Numbered from the stretch's first letter, positions 2,785-51,741 are shown. The stretch is DNA of 64,000 nt from Haliotis rubra (GCF_003918875.1 NW_025766669.1:3472001-3536000), one strand, 5' to 3'. Made by a program: numbers and translations. The notes: a model not told the origin generated them from the sequence alone.

Positions 2785-3355
2785 ATGAAGGAAGGAAACA
2801 AAAATATGAAGAACCTGGATGAGAAATTTGTGTTCTGTGCAGTCATGGGAGATAGTATGGTAGGAAAGACCAGCATCTCCGAGACCTATTCTAAGGGATT
2901 CTTTAATGAGAATTCTGAAACCACAGTATTTGACAAATATGTCGTTCCACTGCAAGTCGCTGGAGAGGAGTTTATCATCAGTATGTTCGACACTGCAGGA
3001 AAGGTATGTTTACCGAGATGTTCACTTAAATTTGCGTTAACATTGAGAACAGATAGAGAACATTGAGAAGAGACACTCCAAACAAACCAAACAGAAGAGA
3101 CCGGTCATCCTCGTTGGCACCAAGATAGACCTCCGGGTCGGCAATCAAGACAGCGAGGTTAGCACTGACGAGGGTGTCCAACTGGCCAAGGACATTGGTG
3201 CTGACTGTTATGTGGAGTGCTCGGCCCGCGACCAGAAGGGTTTGAAGGAGGTATTTCAGCATGTTGTCTTCTCCGCTCTCAAATTCAGGAAAAAGAAAAC
3301 CAACATTTTCAAGAAGATGTTCAGACGCAGAAGTGCCTCTTTTGCCAATTATTAA
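2785..3355 (+). pseudogene. Atypical Rho-family GTPase, array copy 1 (A type), internally deleted
   Basis: Exon 1 is 2785-3003 with a GT donor at 3004. Intron sequence runs directly into mid exon 2 near 3062-3070 (..CATTGAGAAGAGACACTCC..), so the acceptor and the first ~40 codons of exon 2 are missing. The stop-equivalent TAA is at 3353-3355. Confidence 0.85.
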
Positions 3356-6300
3356 ATTCAACACACTGTTATTTGATGAAAGAAAGAAATACACTGCAAG
3401 TTATTTGAATGGGTGTATGAATGTTGGTGCTACGCCAATGAAACTGAATGTAACGTCGTTGGTTGATCTTCAAAAAGGTTTATCCCTGATTGCACACTTA
3501 GGTTGGATTGAGAAAATGGATGTCACCCAATTGAGCAAAGCAAGAGCAGACGAAAGACATTGGTGATGTGCTACTTTATTTATACGTGATATTATAACAA
3601 GGTCTTTAAGAAATGGAAGACTGATTAGTGCTCTTTACAACCATGTCCTATGTCTGTTACTAATGACAATATGAATTTCATATATTCTACTGTTTATTGT
3701 TATCTGTATATGCCTTCAATAAACTATCCATGTTATATATATTTGTTAGTGTCTTGTCTATATATCTCCTTAAATGGATACCTGTTTGGAAACGTTCAGC
3801 TCACAAGAAACACTATAAACCTTTTCCTAAAATCATACTAAGCATCAGATAGAATATGTCAACAACATGTATTTATTAAACACTATGAAATAGTGTTGAT
3901 ACCAAGTATTCACGAAAAGATCAGCGTATTTAGCTCTCACTAGTCCCAAACACAAACAAGTCGACTTTTTACCCCGAGATACTCTCAGATCAAGCAGCTT
4001 GTGAGAAATAGCATTATGATAGGTCGTCTTTCTTGCAATCATGATAGAAAGAACATGCCGGAATGTTCCTCAAAGTCGTAAACTGAGGACAACAACGGCT
4101 GAAGCTCTTGGAATGTTACACACACACACACACACACACAAAGTTGACAATTGAAGTCATCCCTTTGTCATAAGGTCTCTTTCACAGTTCTTGTCACACT
4201 TAATCTTTATGCTCAGATGTAGATATGAATTACATGAGGTGGTTTCACTGGTCTCTACTTTTACAAACTCATTTAGGTAAATCGGCGGAGAGGAACTGGT
4301 TTAACAACTATTGAAATCATATAAGATTATCGCTACACATGAAGCTGACGTTACACTTCTCGTCCAAATCGCCATGCGAGAGCAACGCATTTGGTTTCTG
4401 CAAGAATATGCTGCATAAGGACTGAAGAGTAGAACAAGACTATCCCACGTGACGAATTGATGAATATGAAAATGTATGTGTACAAATTATAGACATTTGT
4501 TTGTATAATAAAAGTGAATGTGAAGGATTTAGATTCGTGTCCAAATAACATGTTACTAGTATCTATTTGGGCTATAGCATATACACACATGTGATCTTTT
4601 TTATTCCGGAATTGGAAAGGTTGTGGTATGTTTTTAATGACAAAGCTTACAGTGATCTCGATATTCACTCCATACATACATGCACTTTGATTAATCCTAT
4701 ACGATAAGCAGCTTTACTGACGTTTATTTACGTAGCTCAAAATTTATAATACGAGCTCCTTCGCGTGTGGTGACACCTCTTTATATCTTAGCCATTTTCT
4801 GCCTAGCTCAGAAAACGTATATCTGTATTCATGCTATAACCTGAGTGTACAGTAATGAGCGTGCCTGTCTGGAGGTGTTATTTCAGCACTTATACATAGG
4901 ATGTCATTGATTTTCTGTTTTTTCTGGATCACTGACGACATGTCACAAATGGCCAACGATCAGAAAAGAAACAATATCATATTGATGCAGTATTGCTGAT
5001 CATTGTATTCTTGAAAAGATACGTACCACCACCTCCAGCCAGAGACGTTGTTCACTCCACAAACATATCCGATTTATTACTTCATTGAGGTTTTCTGAGT
5101 TAAATACTACAAGGTGTAACCCAATGCTTAGAAAGCCTAGTTTGAACATGTCCACATCAAAGAACCAGCATTCCCCTCGATGTCCATATGACGTCTTGCT
5201 GAACACTTCAGAAGCATCCAAATGCACATATTAATTTGCACGTTCATTGTCGCATTTTCAAAAGCATTTCACGTCTACTTGTGTTGCCAAAAATCAAAAG
5301 ACAAGCAATGAACACGTCACGTCTACCTACACATAAAAACGGTGCTGATAATGTTCTTTTACATCGCAAGAAAAACAGCTGATGAACTTCTAAGGAACCG
5401 AGGTTATTGGACAGGATCTGTTTGTCTGGCTTCCGTCCACCGCCACCTTATCCCTTTATTCAAGGAAAACAACCCATTCATTTGTGTGTATCCAATCAGG
5501 TGTGTTTGCTCAGCAACTCTGAACCAGACAAGTACATGATCTTCAACCTTATATTAGACGTTTGTTTTCACAAGACTTACTCTAATTAGACAGATGCTAA
5601 TACTTAGCAAACACATATGACTGTTGGACCAGACATTAGGGATAGATGCTGTAAAGACATAGACAAATACATGAAAGAGAAAAACAACAACAACATCCTA
5701 TTCAAAAATTCTCCTCCGAGATAATGTAACGTTTCCGAAAATAGTGTTTGGCATTCAATTCGATAACTTGCAAACAACTTGATAACATCTGAGGTCATAT
5801 CATGACCAATGAAGGTATGAGTGTAAAGGACACCTTGCATATTGGCAGGAACTGGCATTGTGCATACATGCACATATTTTACCCAAAAAAATCACCTGAA
5901 CACTTTTTAAAAATCGTTCACCTTCAGGGAGATAATATATAATTTATTACAATTTTCTTAGTCGTTTTTTTCAAAACATCGTACATCTATACTAAAAATA
6001 ATACAGGAATCATTGCTAGAGGCTGACGAAAGAAATTTGTGCAGAGCGAAAATCGGTAAGTGTGAGCATTCATTCAAGTTGATATCTACATGTAACTGTC
6101 TGTGAAATAGTCTAGTAGGATAAAAAAACAACGACTCCGCTTTCCACTCAAATAAACCACAGCACAGGGGTTAAAGTGATGTAATTTTAACAATGAAACT
6201 CATTTCGTGTCTCTTCCATCTGTATTGTTTCACCCAGTCTCAATTATCCAGAAACACTAATCCCTACATTTGATTTATCCAATCCGACCTATTTGCTTAA

Positions 6301-6602
6301 CCACTCAAGATTAGACAACGAGGAACACAAGAAAACATACTGGCAGTGGTGCTATATGTGACTGGTCAAGCGTTGAGATCCAAACAAATACTCTAATTAG
6401 ACCACTACTGATCATTGTCTGTCGGTCACAAACGAGACAGCTCAGGACGGTCATCTCAGACTTTGACACCAGTGAGAGCATGTGATACTTCCCTAATTAG
6501 AGGTTAGTCTTCTGATTGGTCGGGAATATCTTTATATTAAAATGTCCACAATGTACTAACAGCAAACGTGTTGTAGATTTGGAACGATAAACAAGCTTAA
6601 AC

Positions 6603-7430
6603 ATGGAAGGAGATAACAAAAATATGAAGAACCTGGATGAGAAATTTGTGTTCTGTGCAGTCATGGGAGATAGTATGGTAGGAAAGACCAGCATCTCCGA
6701 GACCTATTCTAAGGGATTCTTTAATGAGAATTCTGAAACCACGGTGTTTGACAACTATGTCGTTCCACTGCAAGTCGCTGGAGAGGAGTTTGTCATCAGT
6801 ATGTTCGACACTGCAGGAAAGGTATGTTTACTCAGATGGTCGCTTAAATTTCGAGTTAACAATGAGAACAGAACCAGTTACTATGTAAAAGGAATATTGG
6901 ATTAAATATTTCACATTCTGAATTTACAGGAATGGTTCCTATCAATATATTTCAAGGCATCTACGTTTTTCTTCTTTCAATATGTACACATTGTACTGAT
7001 CGTCCCTTCTAATTGTTTTCAGAAACGTTTTTAAAGTCTGAGAATGTTCTCCTACCAGGAATGTGAAGTCCTGCTTCTGTGTTTCTCCACCTGTGACCGG
7101 AAGACATTTCACACTGTCAGTGACCTGTGGATGCCAGAACTGAAGAGACACTCCAAACAAACCAAACAGAAGAGACCGATCATCCTTGTTGGCACCAAGA
7201 TAGACCTCCGGGTCGGCAATCAAGACAGCGAGGTCAGCACGGACGAGGGTGTCCAAATGGCCAAGGACATTGGTGCTGACTGTTATGTGGAGTGCTCGGC
7301 CCGCGACCACAAGGGTTTGAAGGAGGTATTTCAGCATGTTGTCTTCTCCGCTCTCAAATTCAGGAAAAAGAAAACCAACATTTTCAAGAAGATGTTCAGA
7401 CGCAGAAGTGCCTCTTTTGCCAATTATTAA
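6603..7430 (+). pseudogene. Atypical Rho-family GTPase, array copy 2 (B type), premature stop
   Basis: Exons are 6603-6821 and 7023-7430. Exon 2 reads AAA CGT TTT TAA (7032-7034) where intact copies read AAA CGT TTT GAG. Confidence 0.85.
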
Positions 7431-9307
7431 ATTCAACACACTGTTATTTGATGAAAGAAAGAAATACACTGCAAGTTATCTGAATGGGTGTATGAATGAT
7501 GGTGCTACGCCAATCAAACTGAATGTAACATCGTTGGTTGATCTTTAAAAAGGTTTATCCCTGATTGCACACTTAGGTTGGATTGAGAAAATGGATGTCA
7601 CCCAATTGAGCAAAGCAGGTGCAGACGAAAGACATTGATGATGTGCTACTTTATTTCTACATGATATTATAACAAGGTCTTTAAGAAATGGAAGACTGAT
7701 TAGTGCTATTTACAACCATGTCCTATGTCTGTTACTATGACAATATGAATTTCATATATTCTACTGTTTATTGTTATCTGTATATGCCTTCAATAAACTA
7801 TCCATGCTATATATATTTGTTAGTGTCTTGTCTATATATCTCTTAAATGGATACCTTTTGGACACGTTCAGCACAAGAAACACTATAAACCTTTTCCTAA
7901 AATCATACGAAGCATCAGATAAAAAAACAGGATCCGTTGTACAATATGTCAACAACATGTATTTATTAAACACTATGAAATAGTGTTGATGCCAGGTATT
8001 CACGAAAAGATCAGTATATTTTGCTCTGACCAGTACCAAACACAAAAAGTCGACTTTTTACCTCGAGAAACTCTCAGATCAAGCAGCTAGTGAGAAATGG
8101 CATTATGATGGGTCGTATTTCTGGCAATCATGATAGAAAGAACTTGCTCGAATGTTCCTCAAAGTCGTGAAATGAGGACAACAACGACTGAAGCTTTTGG
8201 AATGTTACACACAAAAACGAAAGTTGACATCTGAACTTATCTCTCTTGTAGGATGGACCTGTCTACAGTTCTTGTCACACCTACTTGTTTTGCTCAGATT
8301 TAAATATGAATTCTCATTGGTCACTACATTTTCAAGCTGAGGTAGATAAATCAGTGTCAATAGGAATTGACAGTTTGACAATTATTGAAATCAAATCACA
8401 TTATCGATATATACGCATGAAGCTTAAGTTAAACTTCTTGTCCAAATTTCCATGCGAAACAACGTACAAGTATTTGGTTTCTGACAAGAATATGTTGTAT
8501 TAGGATTGAACAGCGAAACATGAATGTTTCAAGTGACTGCTTTACGAATATGAAAATGTATGTACACACATATTGACTTGTTTGTACAATAAAAGTGAGT
8601 GTGAAGAGACTAAATTTACCTGTTATGTACTTCGACTGTAAAATAGATACCCATGTGGTCTCTTTTAATCCGGAATTGGAAAGGTGTTGCTATTGTTTCA
8701 ATGACAAAGTTTACACTGATCTTGATATTCACACCGTATACACTTTGATTAATGCTATACGAGAAACAGCTTTACTGACATTTATTAACGTAGCCAAAAA
8801 TGAATAATACAAGTTCCTTCACGTGCGGCGACATGTCTTGATATCTTAACTACTTTCTGCCTTTCGAAACGTCCCAGTTAAATGTTTCCTTCCAACTCAG
8901 AAATTAATGGAGTTTAATTCCTACTCTGAAATTAACAGTAAATTAACAATACTGTGACAACGTTTGCCTGGATTGATTGTGTGACTCCTTGTATACGTGT
9001 CGAACACCGAATTTGGGGAAACACGTATCTGTATTCATGCTGTAATCTGAGTGTACAGTAATGAGGGTGCCTGTCTGGAGGTGTTATTTCAGCACTGATA
9101 CATAAGCTGCCAGTCATCTTGTGGATTTTCCGGATCACTGGCGACATATCACACATGGCTGAAACGGATATACATGTTGTTTATCCAAACGATCCGATAA
9201 GAAACATTGTTATATTGATACTGCATTGCTAATCCTTTTATTTGTGTTTATAATCTTAGAACAGACAAGTACCACCACCTCCAGTAAGAGAAGTTGTTTG
9301 TCATTGA

Positions 9308-9553
9308 TGACCCGTGAAGATCCGGGTTAGAATTGATCTTCAGTAACCCATGCTTGTCATAGGAGGCGACTAACGGGATCGAGTGGTCCTAATCGTTGAC
9401 TTGGTCGACACATGTCGTTGTATCCCAATTGCGTAGATCAATGCTCATGCTGGTGATCACTGGATTGTCTGGTGCAGACTCGATTATTTACAGACCGCCG
9501 CCATATAGCTGGAATATTGCTGAGTGCGACGCAAAACTAAACCCACTCACTCA
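9308..9553 (+). mobile_element. SINE-like family A (array-duplicated copy)
   Basis: Same element and site as 1256-1500, with a ~30-nt deletion in the 5' flank. Confidence 0.9.
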
Positions 9554-10847
9554 CTTCATTGACAGTTTCTGAGTTAAAAAACTACAAGGTGTAACCCAAT
9601 GCTTAGAAAGCCCAGTTTGATGGCGTCAACATCAAAGAACCAACATTTCACTTGGATGTTCATATGACATCTAGCCAAATACCCCATAAGCATCCAAATG
9701 CACACATTGCATTGTCTCATTTTTAAAAGCATTTCTCGTCTTCCTGTTTTACCAACTTCCAAAAGTCAAGCAATGACTTCAATAAACATGTCACATCTAC
9801 CTACACATAATGATAATGTTCTTTTACATCACAAAAACCAACTCAAAACCCTCAAAGTAACCATGGTTTTGTTGGAAAAGATCTGTTCGTCTGTGTTCCA
9901 TCCATCGCCGCCTTATCTTTATATTCAAGGAAAACAACCACATTCATTTGTATGAATCCAATCAGTCGTGTTTGCTTAGCCCCCTCTGAAGCAGACAGAT
10001 ACAGAAATTAGGCGTATATTTCACAGAATTCCTCTAATTTGAAAGATACATGTACTTATAATTAGTAAACGCATCTGCATATATTGAACCAGACACTGGA
10101 AATATATGCTGTTAAGACTGGGACAAAAGCATAAATTAAACGAAAAACAAGCAAAGATCTCCCAAGCAAATATGTGTTTGGGAAAGAAAAAACTGGAAAA
10201 AAACTCACCCCTGACTATGTAATATTTCCTGAAATACTTTAGTGCTGTGGTAAACAATACAACAAACAGGTGATGGTAACATCTGACAGGTAACGTCAGA
10301 CATTCATAAAACACCGTACATCAAATCAAAAACAAACACATGAGGCAGTCAAATTGCAAAACTTAATAATGTATGAGGGAGCAAAATTGCTAACACTTTC
10401 CATTCAAAAAAACTGTTGGAGTTGAATTTGCAGTGATGTTATTTTAATACTGAAACTCATTTCGTGTCTCTTCCATCTGTATTATCACACAGTTACCAAT
10501 TATCCAGAGAGACTAATCCCTACATTTGATTAATCCAATCCGACGTATGTTTGCTTAACCACTCAGAATTATACAACGAAGTAACACAAGAAAACATATT
10601 GGCAGTAGTGTTATGTGTGACTGGTCAAGCGTTCAGAGAAACAAATACTCTAATTAGACAGCTACTGATCATTGTCTGTCGATCACAAACGAGACAGCTC
10701 AAGACGGTCATCTCAGACTTTGACACTGATACTTCCCTAATTAGAGGTTAAGTCTTCTGATTGGTCGGGAATATCTTTATATTAAAATCTTCACAAGGTA
10801 CTTACAGCAAACGTGTTGTAGATTTAGATCGATAAACAAGCTTAAAC

Positions 10848-11627
10848 ATGAAGGAAGGAAACAAAAATATGAAGAACCTGGATGAGAAATTTGTGTTCTG
10901 TGCAGTCATGGGAGATAGTATGGTAGGAAAGACCAGCATCTCCGAGACCTATTCTAAGGATTCTTAATGGATTCTTTTTGAATGAGAATTCGCTGGAAAC
11001 CACAGTATTTCGACAAATATGTCGTTCCACTTTGCAAGTCGCCATTTACTATGTAAAGGAATATAGGATTAAATATTTCTATGTAAAAGGAATATAGGAT
11101 TAAATATTTCACATTCTGAATTTACAGGAATGGTTCCTATCAATATATTTCAAGACATCTATGATTTTGTTTTTCAATATGTACACATTGTACTGACCGT
11201 CCCTTCTAATTGTTTTCAGAAACGTTTTGAGAGTCTGAGAATGTTCTCCTACCAGGAATGTGAAGTCCTGCTTCTGTGTTTCTCCACCTGTGACCGGAAG
11301 ACATTTCACACTGTCAGTGACCTGTGGATGCTGTGAACTGAAGAGACACTCCAAACAAACCAAACAGAAGAGACCGATCATCCTTGTTGGCACCAAGATA
11401 GACCTCCGAGTAGGGAATGAAGACAGCGTGGTCAGCTCTGACGAGGGTGTCCAACTGGCCAAGGACATTGGTGCTGACTGTTATGTGGAGTGCTCGGCCC
11501 GCGACCACAAGGGTTTGAAGGAGGTCTTTCAGCATGTTGTCTTCTCGCTCTCAAATTCAGGAAAAAGAAAACCAACATTTTCAAGAAGATGTTCAGACGC
11601 AGAAGTGCCTCTTTTGCCAATTATTAA
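10848..11627 (+). pseudogene. Atypical Rho-family GTPase, array copy 3 (A type), scrambled and frameshifted
   Basis: ATG at 10848. There are several small indels at 10955-11040, loss of the exon 1 3' end and donor, a local duplication at ~11048-11110, and indels in exon 2 (starts 11220) near 11331 and 11546. Part of this may be consensus error. Confidence 0.8.
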
Positions 11628-12405
11628 ATTCAACACACTGTTTTTTGATGAAAGAAGGAAATACACTGCAAGTTATCTGAATGGGTGTATGAATGATGGT
11701 GCTACGCCAATGAAACTGAATGTAACATCGTTGGTTGATCTTCAAAAAGGTTTATCCCTGATTGCACACTTAGGGTGGATTGAGAAAATGGATGTCACCC
11801 AATTGAGCAAAGCAAGAGCAGACGAAAGACATTGGTGATGTGCTACTTTATTTATACGTGATATTATAACAAGGTCTTTAAGAAATGGAAGACTGATTAG
11901 TGCTATTTACAACCATGTCCTGTGTCTGTTACTAATGACAATATGAATTTCATATATTCTACTGTTTATTGTTATCTGTATATGCCTTCAATAAACTATC
12001 CATGCTATATATATTTGTTAGTGTCTTGTCTATATATCTCCTTAAATGGATACCTGTTTGGACACGTTCAGCTCACAAGAAACACTAGAAACCTTTTCCT
12101 AAAATCATACGAAGCATCAGATAGAATATGTCAACAACATGTATTTATTAAACACTATGAAATAGTGTTGATACCAAGTATTCACGAAAAGATCAGTATA
12201 TTTAGCTCTCACTAGTCCCAAACACAAACAAGTCGACTTTTTACCCCGAGATACTCTCAGATCAAGCAGCTTGTGAGAAATAGCATTATGATAGGTCGTC
12301 TTTCTTGCAATCATGATAGAAAGAACATGCTGGAATGTTCCTCAAAGTCGTAAACTGAGGACAACAACGGCTGAAGCTCTTGGAAAGTTACACACACACA
12401 CACAC

Positions 12406-12455
<50 letters not shown>

Positions 12456-14913
12456 GTTGACAATTGAAGTCATCCCTTTGTCATAAGGTCTCTTTCACAG
12501 TTCTTGTCACACTTAATCTTTATGCTCAGATGTAGATATGAATTACATGAGGTGGTTTCACTGGTCTCTACTTTTACAAACTCATTTAGGTAAATCGGCG
12601 GAGAGGAACTGGTTTAACAACTATTGAAATCATATAAGATTATCGCTACACATGAAGCTGACGTTACACTTCTCGTCCAAATCGCCATGCGAGAGCAACG
12701 CATTTGGTTTCTGCAAGAATATGCTGCATAAGGACTGAAGAGTAGAACAAGACTATCCCACGTGACTAATTGACGAATATGAAAATGTATGTGTACAAAT
12801 TATAGACATTTGTTTGTATAATAAAAGTGAATGTGAAGAATTTAGATTCGTGTCCAAATAACATGTTACTAGTATCTATTTGGGCTATAGCATATACACA
12901 CATGTGATCTTTTTTACTCCGGAATTGGAAAGGTTGTGGTATGTTTTTAATGACAAAGCTTACAGTGATCTCGATATTCACTCCATACATACATGTACTT
13001 TGATTAATCCTATACGATAAACAGCTTTACTGACGTTTATTTACGTAGCTCAAAATTAATAATACGAGCTCCTTCGCGTGCAGTGATACCTCTTTATATC
13101 TTAGCCATTTTCTGCCTAGCTCAGAAAACGTATATCTGTATTCATGCTATAACCTGAGTGTACAGTAATGAGCGTGCCTGTCTGGAGGTGTTATTTCAGC
13201 ACTTATACATAGGATGTCATTGATTTATTGGTTTTTCGGGATCACTGACGACATGTCACAAATGGCCAACGATCAGAAAAGAAACAATATCATATTGATG
13301 CAGTATTGCTGATCATTGTATTCTTGAAAAGATACGTACCACCACCTCCAGCCAGAGACGTTGTTCACTCCACAAACATATCCGATTTATTACTTCATTG
13401 AGGTTTTCTGAGTTAAATACTACAAGGTGTAACCCAATGCTTAGAAAGCCTAGTTTGAATATGTCCACATCAAAGAACCAGCATTCCCCTCGATGTTCAT
13501 ATGACGTCTTGCTGAACACTTCAGAAGCATCCAAATGCACATATTAATTTGCACTTTCATTGTCGCATTTTCAAAAGCATTTCACGTCTACTTGTGTTGC
13601 CAAAAATCAAAAGACAAGCAATGAACACGTCACGTCTACCTACACATAAAAACGGTGCTGATAATGTTCTTTTACATCGCAAGAAAAACAGCTGATGAAC
13701 TTCTAAGGAACCGAGGTTATTGGACAGGATCTGTTTGTCTGGCTTCCGTCCACCGCCACCTTATCCCTTTATTCAAGGAAAACAACCCATTCATGTGTGT
13801 GTATCCAATCAGGTGTGTTTGCTCAGCAACTCTGAACCAGACAAGTACATGATCTTCAACCTTATATTAGGCGTTTGTTTTCACAAGACTTACTCTAATT
13901 AGACAGATGCTAATAATTAGCAAACACATATGGCTGTTGGACCAGACATTAGGGATAGATGCTGTAAAGACATAGACAAATACATGAAAGAGAAAACAAC
14001 AACAACATCCTATTCAAAAATTCTCCTCCGAGATAATGTAATGTTTCCGAAAATAGTGTTTGGCATTCAGTTCGATAACTTGCAAACAACTTGATAACAT
14101 CTGAGGTCATATCATGACCAATGAAGGTATGAGTGTAAAGGACACCTTGCATATTGGCGGGAACTGGCATTGTGCATACATGCACATATTTTACAAAAAA
14201 AATCACCTGAACACTTTTATAAAATTGTTCACCTTCAGGGAGATAATATATAATTTATTACAATTTTCTTAATCGTTTTTTTCAAAACATCGTACATCTA
14301 TACTACAAATAATACAGGAATCATTGCTAGAGGCTGACGAAAGAAATTCTTGCAGAGTGAAAATCGGTAAGTGTGAGCATTCATTCAAGTTGATATCTAC
14401 ATGTAACTGTCTGTGAAATAGTCTAGTAGGATAAAAAACAACGTCTCCGCTTTCCACTCAAATAAACCACAGCACAGGGGTTAAAGTGATGTAATTTTAA
14501 CAATGAAACTCATTTCGTGTCTCTTCCATCTGTATTGTTTCACACAGTCTCAATTATCCAGAAACACTAATCCCTTCATTTGATTAATCCAATCCGACGT
14601 ATTTGCTTAACCACTCAGAATTAGACAACGAGGAACACAAGAAAACATACTGGCAGTGGTGCTATATGTGACTGGTCAAGCGTTGAGATCCAAACAAATA
14701 CTCTAATTAGACAGCTACTGATCATTGTCTGTCGGTCACAAACGAGACAGCTCAAGACGATCATCTCAGACTTTGACACCAGTGAGAGCATGTGATACTT
14801 CCCTAATTAGAGGTTAAGTCTTCTGATTGGTCGTGAATATCTTTATATTAAAATGTCCACAATGTACTAACAGCAAACGTGTTGCAGATTTGGAACGATA
14901 AACAAGCTTAAAC

Positions 14914-15741
14914 ATGAAGGGAGGAAACAAAAATATGAAGAACCTGGATGAGAAATTTGTGTTCTGTGCAGTTATGGGAGATAGTATGGTAGGAAAGACC
15001 AGCATCTCCGAGACCTATTCTAAGGGATTCTTTAATGAGAATTCTGAAACCACAGTATTTGACAACTATGTCGTTCCACTGCAAGTCGCTGGAGAGGAGT
15101 TTGTCATCAGTATGTTCGACACTGCAGGAAAGGTATGTTTACTCAGATGGTCGCTTAAATTCCGCGTTAACAATGAGAACAGAACCAGTTACTATGTAAA
15201 AGGAATATAGGATTAAATATTTCACATTCTGAATTTACAGGAATGGTTCCTATCAATATATTTCAAAGCATCTACGTTTTTCTTCTTTCAATATGTACAC
15301 ATTGTACTGACCGTCCCTTCTAATTGTTTTCAGAAACGTTTTGAGAGTCTGAGAATGTTCTCCTACCAGGAATGTGAAGTCCTGCTTCTGTGTTTCTCCA
15401 CCTGTGACCGGAAGACATTTCACACTGTCAGTGACCTGTGGATGCCAGAACTGAAGAGACACTCCAAACAAACCAAACAGAAGAGACCGGTCATCCTTGT
15501 TGGCACCAAGATAGACCTCCGGGTCGGCAATCAAGACAGCGAGGTCAGCACTGACGAGGGTGTCCAACTGGCCAAGGACATTGGTGCTGACTGTTATGTG
15601 GAGTGCTCGGCCCGCGACCACAAGGGTTTGAAGGAGGTCTTTCAGCATATTGTCTTCTCCGCTCTCAAATTCAGGAAAAAGAAAACCAACATTTTCAAGA
15701 AGCTGTTCAGACGCAGAAGTGCCTCTTTTGCCAATTATTAA
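14914..15741 (+). CDS. Atypical Rho-family small GTPase, array copy 4 (B type), intact, 208 aa
   Basis: join(14914..15132,15334..15741) with a phase-0 GT-AG intron. G1 GDSMVGKT, G2 TVFDNY, G3 DTAGK, G4 GTKID, G5 ECSA. C-terminus KFRKKKTNIFKKLFRRRSASFANY, no CAAX. Confidence 0.93.
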
Positions 15742-16102
15742 ATTCAACACACTGTTATTTGATGAAAGAAAGAAATACACTGCAAGTTATCTGAATGGGT
15801 GTATGAATGTTGGTGCTACGCCAATGAAACTGAATGTAACATCGTTGGTTGATCTTCAAAGAGGTTTATCCCTGATTGCACACTTGGGTTGGATTGAGAT
15901 AATGGATGTCACCCAATTGAGCAAAGCAGGTGCAGACGAAAAAATTGGTGATGTGCTACTTTATTTATACGTGATATTATAACAAGGTCTTTAAGAAATG
16001 GAAGACTGATTAGTGCTATTTACAACCCTTGTCTTATGTCTGTTACTATGACAATATGAATTTCATATATTCTACTTTTTATTGTTATCTGTATATGCCT
16101 TC

Positions 16103-16108
16103 AATAAA
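16103..16108 (+). terminator. Putative polyadenylation signal of copy 4
   Basis: AATAAA ~360 nt after the stop, followed by a T/GT-rich stretch. It is retained downstream of all array copies, including the diverged copy 7 3' UTR (~29687). Confidence 0.55.
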
Positions 16109-17649
16109 CTATCCATGTTATATATATTTGTTAGTGTCTTGTCTATATATCTCTTAAATGGATACCTTTTTGGACACGTTCAGCTCACAAGAAACACTAG
16201 AAACCTTTTCCTAAAATCATACGAAGCATCAGATCAAAAAACATGATCCGTTGCACAATATGTCAACAACATGTATTTATTAAACACTATGAAATAGTGT
16301 TGATGCCAGGTATTCACGAAAAGATCAGTATATTTTGCTCTCACCAGTACCAAACACAAAAAGTCGAGTTTTTACCTCGAGAAACTCTCACATCAAGCAG
16401 CTTGTGAGAAATAGCATTATGATGGGTCGTATTTCTGGCAATCATGATAGAAAGAACTTGCTGGAATGTTCCTCAAAGTCGTGAAATGAGGACAACAACG
16501 GCTGAAGCTCTTGGAATGTTACACAAAAAACGAAAGTTGACATCTGAACTTATCTCTCTTGTAGGATGGACCTGTCTACAGTTCTGTCACACTTACTCCT
16601 TTTGCTCAGATTTAAATATGAATTCTCACTGGTCACTACATTTGCAAGCTGAGGTAGATAAATCAGTGTCAATAGGAATTGACAGTTTGACAATTATTGA
16701 AATCAAATCACATTATCGATATATACGCATGAAGCTTAAGTTAAACTTCTTGTCCAAATTTCCATGCCAAACAACGTACAAGTATTTGGTTTCTGACAAG
16801 ATTATGTTGTACTAGGACTGAACAGCGAAACATGAATGTTTCAAGTGACTGCTTTACGAATATGAAAATGTAGATGCACACAATATTGACTTGTTTGTAC
16901 AATAAAAGTGAGTGTGAAGAGACTACATTTACCTGTTATGTACTTCGACTGTAAAATAGATACCCATGTGGTCTCTTTTAATCCGGAATTGGAAAGGTGT
17001 TGCTATTGTTTCAATGACAAAGTTTACACTGATCTTGATATTCACTCCGTATACACTTTGATTAATGCTATACGAGAAACAGCTTTACTGACATTTATTA
17101 ACGTAGCCAAAAATGAATAATACAAGTTCCTTCACGTGCGGCGACATGTCTTGATATCTTAACTACTTTCTGCCTTTCGAAACGTCCCAGTTACATGTTT
17201 CCTTCCAACTCAGAAATTAATGGAGTTTAATTCCTACTCTGAAATTAACAGTAAATTAACAATACTGTGACAACGTTTGCCTGGATTGATTGTGTGACTC
17301 CTTGTATACGTGTCGAACACCGAAGTTCGGGAAACACGTATCTGTATTCATGCTGTAATCTGAGTGTACAGTAATGAGGGTGACTGTCTGGAGGTGTTAT
17401 TTCACCACTTATACATAAGCTGTCACTCATCTTGTGGGTTTTCCGGATCACTGACGACGTATCACACATGGCTGAAACGGACATACATGTTGTTCATCCA
17501 AACGATCCGATAAGAAAACATTGTTATATTGATACTGCATTGCTAATCCTTTTATTTGTGTTTATAATCTTACAACAGACAAGTACCACCATCTCCAGTA
17601 AGAGAAGTTGTTTGTTCAACAATAATGTCTGATTTGTTACTTCACTGAT

Positions 17650-19175: not shown

Positions 19176-20001
19176 ATGAAGGAAGGAAACAAAAATATGA
19201 AGAACCTGGATGAGAAATTTGTGTTCTGTGCAGTCATGGGAGATAGTATGGTAGGAAAGACCAGCATCTCCGAGACCTATTCTAAGGGATTCTTTAATGA
19301 GAATTCTGAAACCACAGTATTTGACAACTATGTCGTTCCACTGCAAGTCGCTGGAGAGGAGTTTATCATCAGTATGTTCGACACTGCAGGAAAGGTATGT
19401 TTACTCAGATGTTCACTTAAATTTGCGTTAACATTGAGAACAGATCCATTTACTATGTAAAAGGAATATAGGATTAAATATTTCACATTCTGAATTTACA
19501 GGAATGGTTCCTATCAATATATTTCAAGGCATCTATGATTTTCTTCTTTCAATATGTACACATTGTACTGACCGTCCCTTCTAATTGTTTTCAGAAACGT
19601 TTGAGAGTCTGAGAATGTTCTCCTACCAGGAATGTGAAGTCCTGCTTCTGTGTTTCTCCACCTGTGACCGGAAGACATTTCACACTGTCAGTGACCTGTG
19701 GATGCCAGAACTGAAGAGACACTCCAAACAAACCAAACAGAAAAGACCGATCATCCTCGTTGGCACCAGGATAGACCTCCGAGTAGGGAATGAAGACAGC
19801 GTGGTCAGCTCAGACGAGGGTGTCCAACTGGCCAAGGACATTGGTGCTGACTGTTATGTGGAGTGCTCGGCCCGCGACCACAAGGGTTTGAAGGAGGTCT
19901 TTCAGCATGTTGTCTTCTCCGCTCTCAAATTCAGGAAAAAGAAAACCAACATTCTCAAGAAGATGTTCAGACGCAGAAGTGCCTCTTTTGCCAATTATTA
20001 A
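19176..20001 (+). pseudogene. Atypical Rho-family GTPase, array copy 5 (A type), 1-nt frameshift
   Basis: Exons are 19176-19394 and 19595-20001. The T run has 3 instead of 4 T (AAACGTTTGAG), giving TGA at 19610-19612. G4 reads GTRID. A homopolymer sequencing error is possible. Confidence 0.7.
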
Positions 20002-32039: not shown

Positions 32040-32952
32040 AATAGGATAAATAAACTTGCTAACACTTTCCATTCAAATGAACTGTTGGAGTTGAATTTGC
32101 AGTGATGTTATTTTAATACTGAAACTCATCTCGTGTCTCTTCCATCTGTATTGTTTCACCCAGTCTCAATTATCCAGAAACACTAATCCCTACATTCGAT
32201 TAATCCAATCCGACGTATTTGCTTAACCACTCAGAATTAGACAACGAGGAACACCAGAAAACATACTGGCAGTGGTGCTATATGTCACTAATCAAGCGTT
32301 GAGATCCAAACAAATACTCTAATTAGACAGCTACTGATCATTGTCTGTCGTTTACGAACGAGACAGCTCAAGACGGTCATCTCAGACTTTGACACCAATG
32401 AGAGCACGTGATACCTCCCTAATTAGAGGTTATGTCTTCAGGTTAATCGGGAATATCTATCTATTTTATCCCAACAATGTACTCACCTCCGCCTTCGAAA
32501 TTCGCATTGTGTCGGAAAGCGCTCGTAAAATCGCCAAAGTCATCATCATTGATGGATCGATAGATAAGCATGAAGATTGGAAAAAAAGATATGGGTGAGG
32601 TGAGGTGAAATTGGGTTTAACGTCGTTCTTGAGAATATTTCGCTCAAATGACGACGTGCATGCGAGTTTATGTGTATGTGCGGCTGCTTGTACTAGCCCA
32701 GACTGAAGCTGGTTTTATAGTGCTAGCCCTCTGAGATACCATGCCGCAGTGAAGCATGAATACCCCACTCAGACACATTATACTGACTCCGAGCCGACCA
32801 GTCCTTGTTGTACCCATTAATGCCGAACGCCAGGCAGGGACCAACAAGTACCATATTTTAACGTCTTTTGGTATGACGCGGTCGGGGATCGAACCCGCGA
32901 CCTTCCGCTCTCCGGTCGGGAAAAAAAAAGATATGAAGAACCTTGATGATGT
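32040..32952 (+). pseudogene. Remnant of an 8th array-type GTPase copy (promoter region plus first codons)
   Basis: 32040-32490 aligns with the array upstream region. ATGAAGATTGGAAAAAAAGATATG (32570) and GATATGAAGAACCTTGATGAT (32930-32950) match the exon 1 start M-K-x-G-x-K-x-MKNLD, split by a SINE. The rest of the gene is absent. Confidence 0.75.
32594..32917 (-). mobile_element. 5'-truncated tRNA-derived SINE family C
   Basis: Minus strand has B box GGTTCGATCCC, body GTCATACCAAAAGACGTTAAAATATGGTAC..TGCCTGGCGTTCGGCATTAA (resembles the Meta-SINE central domain from memory, unverified) and a (CACCT)n tail. Flanked by a GGAAAAAAA(A)GATATG duplication. Confidence 0.85.
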
Positions 32953-32955
32953 ACA

Positions 32956-33219
32956 GTGAGTGAGTTTAGTTTTACGCCGCACTCAGCAATATTCCAGCTA
33001 CATGGCGGGTGTCTGTAAATAAGCGAGCCTGGACCAGACAATCCAGTGATCAACAGCATGAGCATCGATCTGCGCAATTGGGAACCGATGACATGTGTCA
33101 ACCAAGTCAGCGAGCCTGACCACCCGATCCCGTTAGTCGCCTCTTACGACAAGCATAGTCGCCTTTTGTAGCAAGCATGGGTTGCTGAAGGCCTATGCTA
33201 CCCCGGATCTTCACAGGTC
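32956..33219 (-). mobile_element. SINE-like family A, variant subfamily
   Basis: Full-length reverse copy with a duplicated ATGCTTG..AGGCGACTA segment. Confidence 0.9.
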
Positions 33220-36595: not shown

Positions 36596-37004
36596 GTGCA
36601 TTGGTGTGGAAATAGCTACAACCTGGTATCAACATCTCCATCTTCCTTTCGTAGCTGCAACACAGTGTCGAAACATTCTGACGGATCTGCTGATTGACAC
36701 GGTCCGTGACTTTTGGGTTTTCTTAAGGATTACTTGGAAAAGAACACTCACTACCAAAAAGGATCATCATGAAAGACACTTCAAGCAGTTGGTGGTGATG
36801 ATATAGTTTTAGGGTGACTTGGACCAGAAGTAGGGTCTATTTGCGCCTAACACATTAATTGAAATTGAACCATCACAAATATAAGTAGGCATACTGCAAA
36901 TGTTTATGGTAACCTTGCATAAAAAGGACAGGATCTTCTGCTTAGTAACTTGTATTAAAACATCATACAACCAATTTTGGTTTTGAGACGGTAAAAAAAT
37001 CCTT

Positions 37005-37100: not shown

Positions 37101-38223
37101 AAAAACCCACAAAAATATTAGGCTTGTACAATAAAAAACAACAGAAAATCAAACAGAAAAAGAAACATTAAAACGATTTAAAAGCAATACATATATTTGT
37201 TTAATATTTCTACTGGATGATGGCACATGCTTAGATTGTCTCATATTTGCCCGATGCAGCAACGTACTGTAATCACAGGCAAACTGTAGCGCAAATAGGG
37301 TTGCGCAACAAAGAGGAAATGACCAGTCTTGAGCGGAGCGAGCAAAGGTTGGCAACGTACTTCCCTCGCTTCGGTTCGAAAAATGTTTCAAATATCAAAA
37401 TAAAATATCGCCACCATCAAAGGTAGACACCGATTTCCTCACAGGGTTGTGCTCTCAGATTTCCAAGATCATATTTAATAATTACTCACGTAAAATATAT
37501 TTAATTCAACATTCTAAGCGCCACTCGTGGTATATCAAATCGTTCTTCGCCTCCATTACCCCCACCAGCTTCCGGTTCATAACGGGAAGATATTACCATG
37601 GCTGCCTTGACAAGCATCGGGTACTGACGTCCTCGGTTTATCCGAGAATCCCATCAAGTTAGTTGTCAGGTAACAGGACCAAGAAACAATCAAAATATAA
37701 AATATAAACGATTGTTTGTTTTCACACTGAGACCACAATGGGACTCAGATTGATATCTGTTTTCTGCATCCGTTGCCAGGAAACAGCTTCAGATGCCGAT
37801 GGTATTTTCAGATAATGTGAAATTGCAGACTCATTTTCGGAGACCCCACGGACCTTTCAGTGTTAGCGTTATGTTCTAACCCAGTTCGTAATGAGATTAT
37901 TTCGTTCAGAAAGTTCGAACTGAAATCATGTTGAAGTATCTATTCTAGCGTCAGCAACCCGCTATGCCAATAAGCATTATCATGTCTGTATACACACTGG
38001 GACAGATGAGCGTCAGCTTCACCTATCTGAACGCCATTGGTTGCATCACATTTAAGTGCAATATATACTCATGCCAATAATGGTTGTCACCACCACCCCA
38101 CCCCACCCTCCACACCCCTCCCCACACCCACACCTCACACCCCCTCTCCAATAAAAAAAACTGAAAGGGGTGACAACCGTTATTGGCATGAGTATATTTG
38201 GCTGCACAGAACTCATGCCTGAA

Positions 38224-38468
38224 GACACGTGAAGTTCCAGTTTAGAATTGATCTTCAGTAACCCATGCTTGTCGTAAGAGGCGACTAACGGGATTGGGTG
38301 GTCAGGTTCGCTGACTTGGTTGACACATGTCATCGGTTCCCAATTGCGTAGATCGATGCTCATGCTGTTGATCAGTGGATTGTCTGATCCGGACTCGATT
38401 ACTTACAGACCGTCGCCTTATAGTTGGAATATTGCTGAGTGCGGCGTTAAACAACAAAGCAACCAACC
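38224..38468 (+). mobile_element. SINE-like family A
   Basis: Full-length match to the family A head, body and tail. Confidence 0.9.
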
Positions 38469-43072: not shown

Positions 43073-43312
43073 CAGCTGCGATTTTAAATAGTATTGGTAT
43101 AGAGTACATGTGTATGAATATTAGAGGAAAAGACATTGTAAAATAGTTACAAAATATGTTGGCGAACGTATACTATAATCGCACCAAAAACTGTCTAGTC
43201 CCTTCAATCAATCGATTTTTGAGAGGGACTTTTATTTGCGATCTGCTAAGTCACTCATTTCTCTGTGTGGTCTGAGTTACTGAGACCTTTTTGTACCACA
43301 TGTAGTCAACTA

Positions 43313-43564
43313 TGAGTGAGTAAGTGAGTGAGTTTAGTTTTACGCCGTACTCAGCAATATTCCAGCTATATGGCGGCGGTCTGTAAATAATCGAGTCTTG
43401 ACCAGACAATCCAATGATCAACAGCATGAACATCGATCTACGCAGTTGGGAACCGATGACATGTGTCAACCCAGTCAGCGAGCCTGACCACCCGATCCCG
43501 TTAGACGCCTCTTACGACAAGCATGGGTTACTGAAGATCAATTTTAACCCGGAACTTCACGGGT
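43313..43564 (-). mobile_element. SINE-like family A
   Basis: Full-length reverse copy ~380 bp upstream of copy 9. Confidence 0.9.
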
Positions 43565-43884: not shown

Positions 43885-43942
43885 GACAACGGTCGTTTCA
43901 GACGGCACCAGCTGTTGAATACGCACTGACTACAGCAGTAAG

Positions 43943-44797
43943 ATGAAAGACACCAATAGGAAGGGCGATGACGAAAAATACATCTCCTGCGCCATCATGG
44001 GAGACGGCATGGTCGGCAAGACCAGCATCTCCGAGAGCTATGCTCAGAAATCCTTCAAGGAGAACTATGAAGCCACAGTGTTTGACAACTATGTCGTCCC
44101 ACTGCAGGTCGCTGGAGAGGAGTTTGTCATCAGCATGTTTGACACAGCAGGAAAGGTGAGATCTTTATAATGTCATCGGATGGCTTTTCGTTTGAGGATG
44201 AATTTTTGTGACTGTCTCCTTAGATGGGCTTGCCAATGTCTGTTGTATCGATCAGTAATTATACGTATAGCACTATGATTCATTTACACTGACTAAATGT
44301 CAGATGCATTATTGATTTCACAGATTACTAAAAATGAGAATAGAAGGTCTTCATGCATATTCTCGTGGATCTTCAGATAACAATATGTTTACCTTCGAAC
44401 TTTCGTTTTTCAGAAAACCTTTGAGAATCTTCGTTCCTTCACATACTGTGAGAGTGAAGTCCTGCTTCTGTGTTTCTCCACCTGTGACCGGGAGACGTTG
44501 GCCAGCATCAATGACCTGTGGATGCCAGAACTGAAGAGACATTCCAAACATGCCAAACAGAAGAGACCGATCATCCTTGTGGGCACCCAGATTGACCTCC
44601 AGGTCGGGAATGAAGACAGCGAGGTCAGCACGGACGAGGGTGTCCAACTGGCCAAGGACATTGGTGCTGACTGTTATGTGGAGTGCTCGGCCCGCGACCA
44701 CAAGGGTTTGAAGGAAGTCTTTCAGCATGTTGTCTTCTCCGCTCTGAAATTCAGGAAGAAGAACACGAACATTATCAAGAAGATCTTTAGACGTTGA
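43943..44797 (+). CDS. Atypical Rho-family small GTPase, divergent paralog (copy 9), intact, 198 aa
   Basis: join(43943..44155,44414..44797), with the intron at the same position and phase as in the array. GDGMVGKT, YEATVFDNY, DTAGK|KTFENLRSFTY, GTQID, YVECSA. Ends KFRKKNTNIIKKIFRR. Confidence 0.93.
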
Positions 44798-46268: not shown

Positions 46269-46625
46269 AGTGAGTGAGTGAGTTGAGTTTTACCCCGCAC
46301 TCAGCAATATTCCAGCTATATGGCGCCGGTCCGTAAATAATCGAGTCTAGACCAGACAATCCAGTGATCATGATTAGAGATGTATAATCTGAACCAGTGT
46401 CTCTTTTAGATCTGTAACCCATGCTTGTCGTAATAGACGACTAACGTGATAGGGTGGTCAGGCTCGCTGACTTGGTTGACACATGTCATCGTATCCCAGT
46501 TGCGTAGATCGATGCTCATGCTGTCGATCACTGGATTGTCTGATCCAGATTCGATTATTTACAGACCGCCGCCATATAGCTGGAATAGTTTTAAGTGCGA
46601 CGTAAAACTAAACTCACTCACTCAC
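46268..46625. mobile_element. Two SINE family A pieces: a minus-strand 3' fragment at 46268-46370 and a 5'-truncated plus-strand copy at 46414-46625
   Basis: Match to the family A body and tail. Confidence 0.85.
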
Positions 46626-46719
46626 TCTTTGAGTACAGTGGTAAAGTCTCCTTCCACAGGTACATATGTAAACCTTGTACTGAATTGATTGTACAATCAC
46701 AACTACTAAACATGTAAAC

Positions 46720-47060: not shown

Positions 47061-47332
47061 CTTGTACTAGCGACTAGTTCACCAATAGTTTTTGTCATTT
47101 CCCTTTTCTTAACCTCTCTCTTCAGTAGAAATCCAATGCTCATACATGTATGTTCTTTTTTATTTAGATCAGAACAGTAAGCATATTTCAGGCCAACTGT
47201 CGACATGACGCAGGCCGGTCTTATAAGCCTTACTGCTGGTATTGCCATTTCGAAAAGATTATATGATACTGGCTTGTTGAACTTGTTTTTAAATTCACGT
47301 TTGATCTGCTGGAATTGTCTCTTTTAGATCTG

Positions 47333-47543
47333 TAACCCATGCTTGTCGTAAGAGGCGATTAACGGGATCGGGTGGTCAGGGTCGCTGACTTGGTTGGCAC
47401 ATGTCATCGGTTTCTAATTGCGCAGATCGATGTTCGTGCTGTTGATCACTGGATTGTCTGGTCCAAACTCGATTATTTACAGACCGCCGCCATATAGCTG
47501 GAATATTGCTGAGTACGGCGTAAAACTAAACTCACTCACTCAC
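47333..47543 (+). mobile_element. 5'-truncated SINE family A
   Basis: Flanked by CTCTTTTAGA at 47319 and 47543. Confidence 0.9.
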
Positions 47544-48129
47544 TCTTTTAGACCTGATAAAATATTTTTAAAACATTGGCCCTCACAGGGGTCTGCAAAG
47601 TCAATCAACTTCTTATTTACCAACTTTGCATTTTTTTATTTAAGCTATCACTTTCTCTAATTTAATTTGTTTGGGTATAAAATCTTGGTGGGATGCACCA
47701 CAATCTCCATCAAAGCTATTTTACTCATATTTTACCCAATTTGTATGGAAGTGTGTCCGCCTTTCGCACCTACAAGATAGAAAAGGATACTTAATGGACC
47801 TTATAACTTTGTGATTAGTGGTTGTCAGTGTCCCTAGGCCTAGGTGCTTGTCCGCCCACGTCGCATATGGTCAAGATTCCATGGGCGATACGACAAAAAG
47901 TGTCCACTCCGGTCGGGCACATATCCTCGGGATTAACTTCTCAGTCCCCAGGGCAGACACTGCCTTTGTGTCCCCCGCAAGGTCGTCTTACTCCCAAAAC
48001 CCCCATTCCCCATCCTCGCCACGTGCACACACACGCTCTTACAGAGAGAGAGAGAGGGGAGGGGAGAGAGAGAAAGAAAGAAAGAGAAAGACATTCTCGC
48101 CTGCGCATGCTCAAATCCTTCCATGCTCT

Positions 48130-49798: not shown

Positions 49799-49829
<31 letters not shown>

Positions 49830-50619: not shown

Positions 50620-50678
50620 CACGTGATCTCCGCGGCAAGTGAGTTCTTGTTCCTTATTGGTCAGTTGTGTCTATATAA
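50620..50678 (+). promoter_or_regulatory. Putative core promoter of copy 10
   Basis: CACGTG 50620-50625, ATTGG 50656-50660, TATATAA 50672-50678. Confidence 0.65.
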
Positions 50679-50742
50679 CCAAGTACGCTGGCACGGACTG
50701 GCACAGGTTGTGTGACAGCCACTCACGATAAACTACAGAGCA

Positions 50743-51741
50743 ATGAAGGGTAGCAATATGAAGAATGATGAGCAGAAATACATCTCCTGCGCCATCATGG
50801 GAGACGGCATGGTCGGCAAGACCAGCATCTCCGAGAGCTATGCTCAGAAATCCTTCAAGGAGAACTATGAAGCCACAGTGTTTGACAACTATGTCGTTCC
50901 ACTGCAGGTTGCTGGAGAGGAGTTTGTCATCAGCATGTTTGACACAGCAGGAAAGGTGAGGATATGTTTCAACTTTTCTCGGTTATTGACAGTACATGTA
51001 TTATATATATGTTTTTAGTATCAGTTGGGGCGGTGGGGTAGCCGAATAGTTAAAGCTTTCGCTCCTCTCACCGAAGACCGGGTTCCATTCCCCAAATGGG
51101 AACAATGTGTGAAGCCCAATTCTGGTGTCCCCTGCCGTAGTATTGCTGGAATAATACCAAAATAAGCGTAAAACTAGACTCATTTTGTATTATTTAATTA
51201 GGACAGCCCCTCAAACATGTCACGATAACTGTGTACATTGTTAATTCTAAGTAGCTATGCTAATGTCTTAATACACTTTCAAATGAAAAAATTGCCAAAC
51301 CTGATGCTTTAAAAAAAATCACATATTTACCATTGCTATTTCAATTTTCAGAAAAACTTTGAGAATCTTCGTTCCTTCACATACCGTGAGAGTGAAGTCC
51401 TGCTTCTGTGTTTCTCCACCTGTGACCGGGAGACGTTGGCCAGCATCAATGACCTGTGGATGCCAGAACTTAAGAGACACTCCAAACATGCCAAACAGAA
51501 GAGACCGGTCATCCTCGTGGGCACCCAGATTGACCTCCGGGTCGGGAATGAAGACAGCGAGGTCAGCACGGACGAGGGTGTCCAACTGGCCAAGGACATT
51601 GGTGCTGACTGTTATGTGGAGTGCTCGGCTCGCGACCACAAGGGTTTGAAGGAAGTCTTTCAGCATGTTGTCTTCTCCGCTCTGAAATTCAGGAAGAAGA
51701 ACACGAACATTATCAAACAGATTTTCAGATCGATACATTAA
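50743..51741 (+). CDS. Atypical Rho-family small GTPase, divergent paralog (copy 10), intact, 200 aa
   Basis: join(50743..50955,51352..51741). GDGMVGKT, DTAGK|KNFENLRSFTY, GTQID, YVECSA. Ends KFRKKNTNIIKQIFRSIH. The intron carries a SINE. Confidence 0.93.
51027..51182 (+). mobile_element. tRNA-derived SINE family B in the intron of copy 10
   Basis: GGGGCGGTGGGGTAGCCGAATAGTTAAAGC..GGTTCCATTCCC..GCTGGAATA. Confidence 0.88.

Follow-up and report, generated by a model that had tools for sequence, protein, structure and literature searches.

The 64 000-nucleotide stretch of the abalone Haliotis rubra analysed here (the window; contig QXJH01000026.1 of assembly GCA_003918875.1, from ~3,472,001, with a match of 100%) carries nine two-exon genes for Rho GTPases, all on the + strand, which were located by tblastn with both exons and by a six-frame motif scan. 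Seven of them form a tandem array and two (copies 9 and 10) lie outside it (Table 1); five of the nine (copies 4, 6, 7, 9 and 10) are intact. The feature is real and had been correctly read in an initial annotation. It is an abalone-specific, Cdc42-derived set of Rho genes that bear the sequence signature of GTPase-deficient atypical Rho proteins. We think it somewhat probable that the intact copies are functional atypical Rho GTPases of Haliotis origin, derived from a branch of the Cdc42 lineage that is peculiar to molluscs, lacks the CAAX box and has a short Rho insert.

The initial annotation had reported Lys at position 61 in every copy that retains the G3 box, Ser at position 12 throughout the array with Gly12 in the two outlying copies, and retention of the nucleotide-binding elements, and all three observations held when the motifs and splice junctions were examined. 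DTAGK occurs in 8/8 of the copies that keep the G3 box (ending at 3003, 6821, 15132, 19394, 23462, 28691, 44155 and 50955), GDSMVGKT in 7/7 of the array copies (starting at 2848, 6666, 10911, 14977, 19239, 23307 and 28536) and GDGMVGKT in copies 9 and 10 (at 44000 and 50800). The G4 motif is GT[KQ]ID in eight of the nine copies (GTRID in copy 5), ECSA was found in all nine, and TVFDNY is present wherever a copy retains that region. Exon 1 ends in AAG/GTATGT (or with GTGAGA or GTGAGG after the junction, shown here as a slash) and exon 2 follows TTTTCAG/AAA in phase 0, giving a spliced switch II, DTAGK-KRFESLRMFSY, of the same length as that of Cdc42; the Lys is therefore truly residue 61 and does not result from translation running on into the intron. 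Since the copies are duplicates with a common history, K61 throughout the set represents one or a few substitution events and not nine. Sensitive tblastn revealed no further hidden copy in the window apart from a remnant at ~32.9 kb, and none of the other open reading frames of 29–64 kb had a Pfam match. That remnant had been counted as a 'copy 8', which is not a gene, while the copies numbered 9 and 10 are genes indeed.

Both exons matched the Pfam Ras family (PF00071). In phmmer searches of PDB the full-length protein scored 130 bits against TC10/RhoQ, 127 against Cdc42 and 113 against Rac1, and each exon alone also had TC10 as its best match, followed by Cdc42. The search returned 575 sequences at E <= 1e-10, and the best 60 comprised TC10, Cdc42, Rac and the plant Rac-like ARAC7, with no Rnd or RhoH among them. 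An AlphaFold2 model (mean predicted local distance difference test score, pLDDT, 86.9) retrieved exclusively Rho-family structures as top matches in a Foldseek search of PDB (Rac, Cdc42, RhoA and TC10; template modelling score ~0.85, 34–38% identity). The G1–G5 motifs and the small-GTPase fold are thus present. The catalytic residues G12 and Q61 of typical members are replaced, with K61 in 8/8 of the copies that keep the G3 box and S12 in the array, and G12 is left only in copies 9 and 10. The Rho insert is shortened, with 28 residues between G4 and G5 as opposed to 37 in canonical Rho proteins (a 9-residue gap in HMMER alignments to TC10 and Cdc42), and the insert helix is absent from the AlphaFold2 model, in which pLDDT is 66 at residues 131–140. 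No Haliotis member carries a CAAX box, and the tail has no Cys in the Haliotis members and in most of the mollusc clade described below. This tail has a net charge of +6 to +10 and a hydrophobic moment of 0.65–0.87 over 11 residues, and the model predicts a long basic helix at residues 172–205 that continues alpha-5.

The proposal that these Rho proteins are independent of vertebrate Rnd and RhoH was borne out, their nearest relatives being TC10 and Cdc42, and the loss of G12 and Q61 is for that reason independent of the loss in the vertebrate atypical Rho proteins. We rejected orthology with Rnd or RhoH on the basis of the 60 best PDB matches listed (TC10, Cdc42 and Rac, with ARAC7), the trees described below containing no Rnd or RhoH sequences. 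A feature search of the ESM Atlas ranked a RhoH cluster first and also listed Rnd3, which we take as a lead to convergence and not as evidence of kinship.

Proteins of this architecture turned up mollusc-wide in a large protein search, with representatives in gastropods, bivalves and a chiton. Members share a GDGMVGKT-type P-loop, 27–31 residues between G4 and G5 and a Cys-less tail (...FSALK[FY]RKKKxNIxxRxFxR), and have been automatically named 'Cdc42 homolog', 'RhoJ-like' or hypothetical protein (e.g. Biomphalaria P0016, Gigantopelta P0021, Solemya P0034 and Liolophura P0059). In the tree they form a clade with support of 100/98–99 on a long stem. When anchors were included (outgroup fungal RhoA/Rho1), the clade joined CAAX-bearing lophotrochozoan paralogues of Cdc42 (96/95), and the whole group was sister to bona fide Cdc42 (97/90). 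The earlier placement in a 'Cdc42/RhoJ/RhoQ branch' is therefore supported as far as the relation to Cdc42 goes, and its RhoJ/RhoQ part is unsupported, since the clade attaches to the lophotrochozoan Cdc42 paralogues in a tree that contains no vertebrate RhoJ or RhoQ. The CAAX-bearing paralogue of Haliotis itself (P0137) scored higher against Cdc42 than against TC10. The only systematic survey of mollusc Rho proteins found describes nine subfamilies, including a CAAX-bearing Tc10, the second Cdc42-like gene (PMC4669188, Li et al. 2015), and mentions neither a CAAX-less clade nor catalytic substitutions; no description of a CAAX-less, short-insert mollusc Rho clade was found in the literature searched.

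Most of this parent clade keeps the canonical catalytic residues, with G12 in 37/43 and Q61 in 40/43 members, so that the notion of a whole family of GTPase-dead type applies to the Haliotis sub-lineage and not to the mollusc-wide clade. Haliotis sequences form a clade with 100/100 support, in which P0008, a canonical paralogue with G12 and Q61, is sister to every other copy (100/99); in H. cracherodii this gene and the array are ~93 kb apart. K61 is present in both the array-type and the copy-9/10-type genes of H. rubra, H. rufescens, H. cracherodii and H. asinina, and these sequences place its origin inside Haliotis, from a Q61 ancestor. Variants at positions 12 and 61 comprise K61 or E61 with S, D or E12 in Haliotis, E12 with L61 in Patella, V12 in Potamilus, D12 in Tegillarca, E12 in Liolophura and R61 in Sinanodonta.

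Several features of the clade in other molluscs were also recorded. Freshwater mussels have clusters of their own, with consecutive locus tags on one contig (Sinanodonta P0036, P0037, P0050, P0055, P0070 and P0144; Potamilus P0039, P0041, P0045 and P0046), and scattered freshwater-mussel members carry V12, D12 or R61. In Sinanodonta, clade member 036385 is directly followed by ACJMK2_036386, the CAAX-bearing Cdc42 paralogue. These adjacent locus tags would be suggestive of a tandem origin from the CAAX-bearing paralogue, but P0137 lies 53 Mb from the array, on the same chromosome, in H. cracherodii, and we did not retain this origin other than as a lead. In caenogastropods (Babylonia, Littorina, Nucella and related contigs) the proteins (P0024, P0025, P0057, P0060, P0063, P0065, P0029, P0032 and P0067) are extended at the C terminus by a stretch whose last residues are -SC or -SCC. 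It is absent in Haliotis and from its sequence may be an alternative lipidation signal.

Among 12 proteins of the K61 clade, residues 10, 11, 13–17, F28, T35, D57 and G60 are invariant and K61 is fixed, while position 12 occurs in four states (S, G, D and E). Mapped on the tree of the family, substitutions inside Haliotis number at least five for position 12 and three for position 61. Only seven of the 177 G-domain columns are conserved in 37 non-Haliotis molluscs yet change at least three times in 16 Haliotis proteins, namely 12, 32, 34, 60, 61, the x-residue of G4 and one tail site; five of these seven contact the gamma-phosphate or the catalytic water. Binding residues that stay strictly conserved while 12, 32, 34, 60 and 61 are released from constraint constitute the pattern expected if nucleotide binding is selected and hydrolysis is not, and agree with what is established for Rnd, RhoBTB and RhoH. 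Ratios of nonsynonymous to synonymous divergence (dN/dS, Nei–Gojobori method, NG86) were 0.17–0.22 for array genes compared between species (synonymous divergence, dS, 0.27–0.5), 0.26–0.29 for the array against copies 9 and 10, and 0.10–0.14 against P0008. The between-species ratios (~0.2) support the view that the genes are under purifying selection and are an indirect argument for function.

Gene structure offers a reason why the replacement should be Lys. In all Haliotis genes that were examined, exon 1 closes with codon 61, in the form xAG/GT, which reads CAG/GT in P0008, AAG/GT in all K copies and GAG/GT in P0001 and P0006. If the AG/GT donor is kept, only the first base of the codon is free, and the one-step sense changes of Gln are then Lys or Glu only; these are both the replacements of Gln61 seen in Haliotis. 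From this sequence pattern we infer that a splice constraint shaped the substitution at 61. The P0008 gene (H. cracherodii, L003:10001-11667) has an extra phase-1 intron after ...FENYA (L003 10155-10755), and since exon 1 is single in all derived copies and split in P0008, the K61 lineage has lost this intron precisely.

Taken together, these features suggest the following mechanism. The set of residues that guanine nucleotide and Mg2+ binding requires is complete (GxxxxGKT, F28, T35, D57, G60, T[KQ]xD and ECSA), and the Cdc42-type effector loop TVFDNY has been retained. The catalytic Gln61 gave way to Lys, and position 12 could thereafter turn into Ser, Asp or Glu. GTP would be bound and would not be hydrolysed, either intrinsically or with the arginine finger of a RhoGAP (GAP, GTPase-activating protein), and the proteins would reside permanently in the effector-binding conformation, like Rnd1–3 and RhoH. 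Having no prenyl group, they would not be extracted by RhoGDI, and they would probably reach the membrane through the strongly basic amphipathic C-terminal helix. How active they are would then depend on how much protein there is, where it sits and how fast it turns over, with phosphorylation of the RRRSAS tail as a possible further control in the array copies. That the proteins are 'always on' is accordingly a prediction from sequence. Rnd, RhoBTB and RhoH, which are without G12, A59 or Q61, are GTPase-defective (PMC8072805), and Q61K in NRAS is an activating driver mutation (PMC6562738).

A number of observations weigh against this interpretation. As assembled, 4/8 of the H. rubra array copies are broken (1, 2, 3 and 5, counting an additional copy 0 located just upstream of the window). 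Three small RNA runs yielded no spliced joint at 14000-19999, giving only short contigs of 93–95% identity on the conserved half of exon 2, and the protein collection contained no transcript-derived protein of K61 type. G60 has been lost in the relatives P0001 and P0006 (both E61) and P0004 (Q61, G60A), and the P-loop of one of the two array genes of H. cracherodii, b1, carries G15E, so that some members may be on the way to becoming pseudo-GTPases that no longer bind nucleotide. In addition, the replacement of E62, D63 and Y32 could have effects on nucleotide affinity or effector binding that are hard to predict, and gene conversion between paralogues may distort both the tree-based counts of change and the pairwise dN/dS. 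Finally, a missing Gln61 is not always fatal to regulated hydrolysis, Rap using an Asn supplied by its GAP. The H. cracherodii b1 gene (L002:5052-5951) reads GDEMVEKT in an otherwise intact frame, a change that from its position should abolish phosphate binding, and its neighbour b2 keeps GDEMVGKT.

The broken copies raise the question of whether the set consists mostly of decaying duplicates, a by-product of unequal crossing-over in which K61 and S12 are early stages of pseudogenisation and function stays with the canonical Q61 paralogue. Array copies inactivated by differing lesions, the death of all three units of one type (B, see below), the truncated remnant at ~32.9 kb, the relatives without G60 or P-loop G15, the RNA runs without a spliced joint in the array and a within-array dN/dS of ~0.3–1.3 (calculated on very few differences) would all fit such decay. 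We nevertheless regard it as unlikely, because K61 persists together with intact binding motifs in four Haliotis species at a dS of 0.27–0.5 and a dN/dS of ~0.2, variation is concentrated at catalytic positions and not evenly spread, splice sites and frames are intact in five window copies, and the tandem array of H. asinina has three complete intact 208-amino-acid genes and, from a fourth gene, an intact exon 1.

Rap has Thr61, and it provides a precedent for the idea that these proteins, or at least copies 9 and 10, are switches that still cycle with the help of a specialised GAP supplying the catalytic residue in trans, as in Rap/RapGAP. G12, Y32, T35 and G60 are indeed kept by copies 9 and 10, and likewise by the H. 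rufescens and H. cracherodii orthologues of these two. The five changes at position 12 in Haliotis, however, have introduced bulky or charged side chains (S, D and E), also in the H. asinina orthologues of copies 9 and 10; entry of a GAP finger or thumb is hard to reconcile with such a residue. Switch II is also remodelled (E62K, D63 lost) and we know of no candidate GAP, so that continued cycling seems to us quite unlikely. It is very unlikely that the proteins are nucleotide-free or non-signalling sponges that sequester guanine nucleotide exchange factors (GEFs), GAPs and CRIB effectors from prenylated Cdc42 and Rac, as the absent lipid anchor, conserved TVFDNY loop, charge-reversed switch II and potential of multiple copies for partner titration might suggest, since the P-loop, T35, D57, G60, the G4 Asp and ECSA are all strictly conserved, as would be expected of proteins that truly bind nucleotide and Mg2+, and the T17N- or D57-type changes usual for a GEF trap are absent.

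Functional, GTP-bound atypical Rho proteins thus remain our preferred interpretation. A far wider proposal can be built on it, according to which molluscs possess an unrecognised Rho subfamily that works on the membrane through a basic amphipathic helix, with neither prenylation nor an insert helix, and has repeatedly and independently abandoned the GTPase timer, the abalone set being constitutively 'on' Cdc42-like effector binders deployed by transcription, e.g. in stress or immunity, and conceivably serving as targets, or as decoys, of pathogen factors directed at Gln61, Thr35 or Tyr32 of Rho. As a whole we consider this speculative and distinctly improbable.

The array (window 1-30133) is a higher-order repeat in which A-type units (2, 4 and 6) alternate with B-type units (1, 3 and 5). 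A-type units are 96–97% identical to one another and 85–88% identical to B-type units, and copy 7 represents a third type. All three B-type genes are broken, each by a different lesion, while three of four A-type genes are intact when copy 0 is taken as A-type. This copy 0, an intact eighth array copy, encodes a product identical to P0009 of RefSeq. Very little divergence separates the copies of any one species (dS 0.008–0.05), which indicates concerted evolution or recent re-amplification. We view the array as a tandem repeat under birth-and-death and concerted evolution, and not as a device tuned for dosage. It had been suggested that control by expression and gene dosage could explain the amplification, an idea that is not supported, half of the array being broken in H. 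rubra; as to its expression part, transcription of the array was not demonstrated by the RNA runs. Stress-regulated promoters likewise found no support, a scan of the window for heat-shock elements having given neither a perfect nGAAnnTTCnnGAAn nor an inverse site, where ~0.9 would be expected by chance. About 27 kb upstream of the window, on the opposite strand, P0001 (H. rubra, L004:10001-11056) combines a very diverged exon 1 (GDSRIGKS, DTASE) with an exon 2 of 96% protein identity to that of copy 9, a combination that suggests exon-restricted gene conversion among cluster members.

Expression has been reported for genes of uncertain identity. An unspecified 'cdc42 homolog' is up-regulated in abalone after Vibrio challenge (PMC11250055), and a 'cdc42 homolog' is co-induced with HSP70 B2-like, BAG3-like and DDIT4-like genes in H. 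laevigata (bioRxiv 10.1101/2025.08.18.670794); the gene behind the name is ambiguous in both papers. As the K61 genes are automatically named like Cdc42, these signals may not stem from housekeeping Cdc42. Two short proteins in the European Nucleotide Archive (P0011 and P0013) were considered as possible transcripts and rejected, being exon-2-only genomic predictions that start inside the intron.

The individual copies are listed in Table 1. In copy 1 a deletion has taken out the intron's 3' portion together with roughly the first 40 codons of the second exon. The annotators' 173-amino-acid model P0017 corresponds to this copy, and was rejected as independent confirmation of the deletion because it is an annotation of the same assembly. 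A public gene call for copy 2 (L005:13819-14646; window 1-13355 equals locus L005 7217-20571) gives a 208-residue product despite the in-frame stop, which the annotation apparently reads through or patches. Copy 3 has a 13-nucleotide insertion and further indels. Copy 5 is one T short in a TTTT run (19600-19602), which shifts the frame so that a stop follows after 5 codons; such a lesion could be an assembly error, of a kind that long-read assembly can produce. Intact copy 4 combines S12, K61, TKID and ECSA with a tail ending ...RRRSASFANY, without a CAAX box, and copies 9 and 10 combine G12, K61 and TQID with tails ending ...KKIFRR and ...KQIFRSIH respectively. In the remnant the upstream region is 88% identical to an array unit, and ~20 nucleotides of coding sequence (ATGAAGAACCTTGATGA...) are left at 32933-32959.

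Table 1. Rho gene copies and gene remnant in the window.
Feature	Position	Strand	Details
Array copy 1, B-type, broken	2785..3355	+	Exon 1 2785-3003 (GDSMVGKT, DTAGK); exon-2 remainder 3068-3355
Array copy 2, A-type, broken	6603..7430	+	Exons 6603-6821, 7023-7430; in-frame TAA 7032-7034 (exon-2 codon 4)
Array copy 3, B-type, heavily damaged	10848..11627	+	P-loop retained; G3 box lost; exon 2 frameshifted
Array copy 4, A-type, intact, 208 aa	14914..15741	+	Exons 14914-15132, 15334-15741
Array copy 5, B-type, broken	19176..20001	+	Exon 1 19176-19394; exon 2 from 19595
Array copy 6, A-type, intact, 208 aa	23244..24071	+	Exons 23244-23462, 23664-24071
Array copy 7, third unit type, intact, 208 aa	28473..29300	+	Exons 28473-28691, 28893-29300
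Remnant of further unit (previously 'copy 8')	32052..32959	+	Promoter-like upstream stretch 32052-32465
Copy 9, intact, 198 aa	43943..44797	+	Exons 43943-44155, 44414-44797
Copy 10, intact, 200 aa	50743..51741	+	Exons 50743-50955, 51352-51741

A dispersed repeat of ~240 bp also occurs in the window, on both strands and once per array unit (e.g. 17600-17999), with copies at ~32955-33156, 36371-36597, 38219-38452, 43308-43564, 46411-46626 and 47329-47544 and several more in 52–61 kb. Its depth in one DNA run was ~10^6, compared with ~30 for the flanks, and this extreme depth marks it as a very high-copy abalone element resembling a short interspersed nuclear element (SINE) or a miniature inverted-repeat transposable element (MITE).

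Natural loss of catalytic residues is already a familiar theme in small GTPases, and GTPase-deficient Rho proteins (Rnd, RhoH and RhoBTB) are usually seen as a few, mostly vertebrate oddities; here what appears to be the same solution has come from a Cdc42-like invertebrate ancestor. The canonical Q61/G12 sister paralogue in the same gene cluster provides a built-in control, and the natural series at positions 12 (G, S, D and E) and 61 (Q, K and E) could show what a Rho protein does without its timer. The abalone system also gives a chance to ask how Rho works without prenylation or RhoGDI, and a splice donor that limits codon 61 to Q, K or E would be a case of gene structure channelling protein evolution. 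At a practical level, the automatic names 'Cdc42 homolog' and 'RhoJ-like' in four abalone genomes mean that expression studies may misattribute the signal of these genes to housekeeping Cdc42.

Among known systems, Rnd1, Rnd2, Rnd3 (RhoE) and RhoH resemble the abalone proteins in having G12 and Q61 naturally replaced while the nucleotide-binding motifs are kept; RhoH also has a shortened Rho insert (PMC8072805), and control of Rnd and RhoH by abundance, phosphorylation and turnover instead of GEF/GAP cycling is what is likewise predicted for the abalone proteins. Rnd and RhoH have CAAX boxes and are prenylated, whereas the abalone proteins do not have the box, use Lys as the replacement and keep Ala59, and their sequences mark them as convergent with Rnd and RhoH and not orthologous. 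Cdc42 and TC10/RhoQ are the best matches in sequence and fold (36–38% identity) and share TVFDNY, ECSA and, with copies 9 and 10, GTQID, a likeness to which the intron directly after codon 61 of the abalone genes can be added. The abalone proteins differ from both in the missing CAAX box, an insert ~9 residues shorter, a 4-residue basic insertion before G4 and a remodelled switch II (Q61K, E62K, D63 and P69 lost), together with S12 and Y32S in the array. RhoBTB is, like them, an atypical Rho without CAAX and without G12 and Q61 (PMC8072805), but is large and contains BTB domains, in contrast to the single-domain abalone proteins of ~200 amino acids. The CAAX-less mollusc clade is the direct parent family of the Haliotis genes, from which the Haliotis sub-lineage is set apart by fixation of K61, variation at position 12, loss of one intron and tandem expansion.

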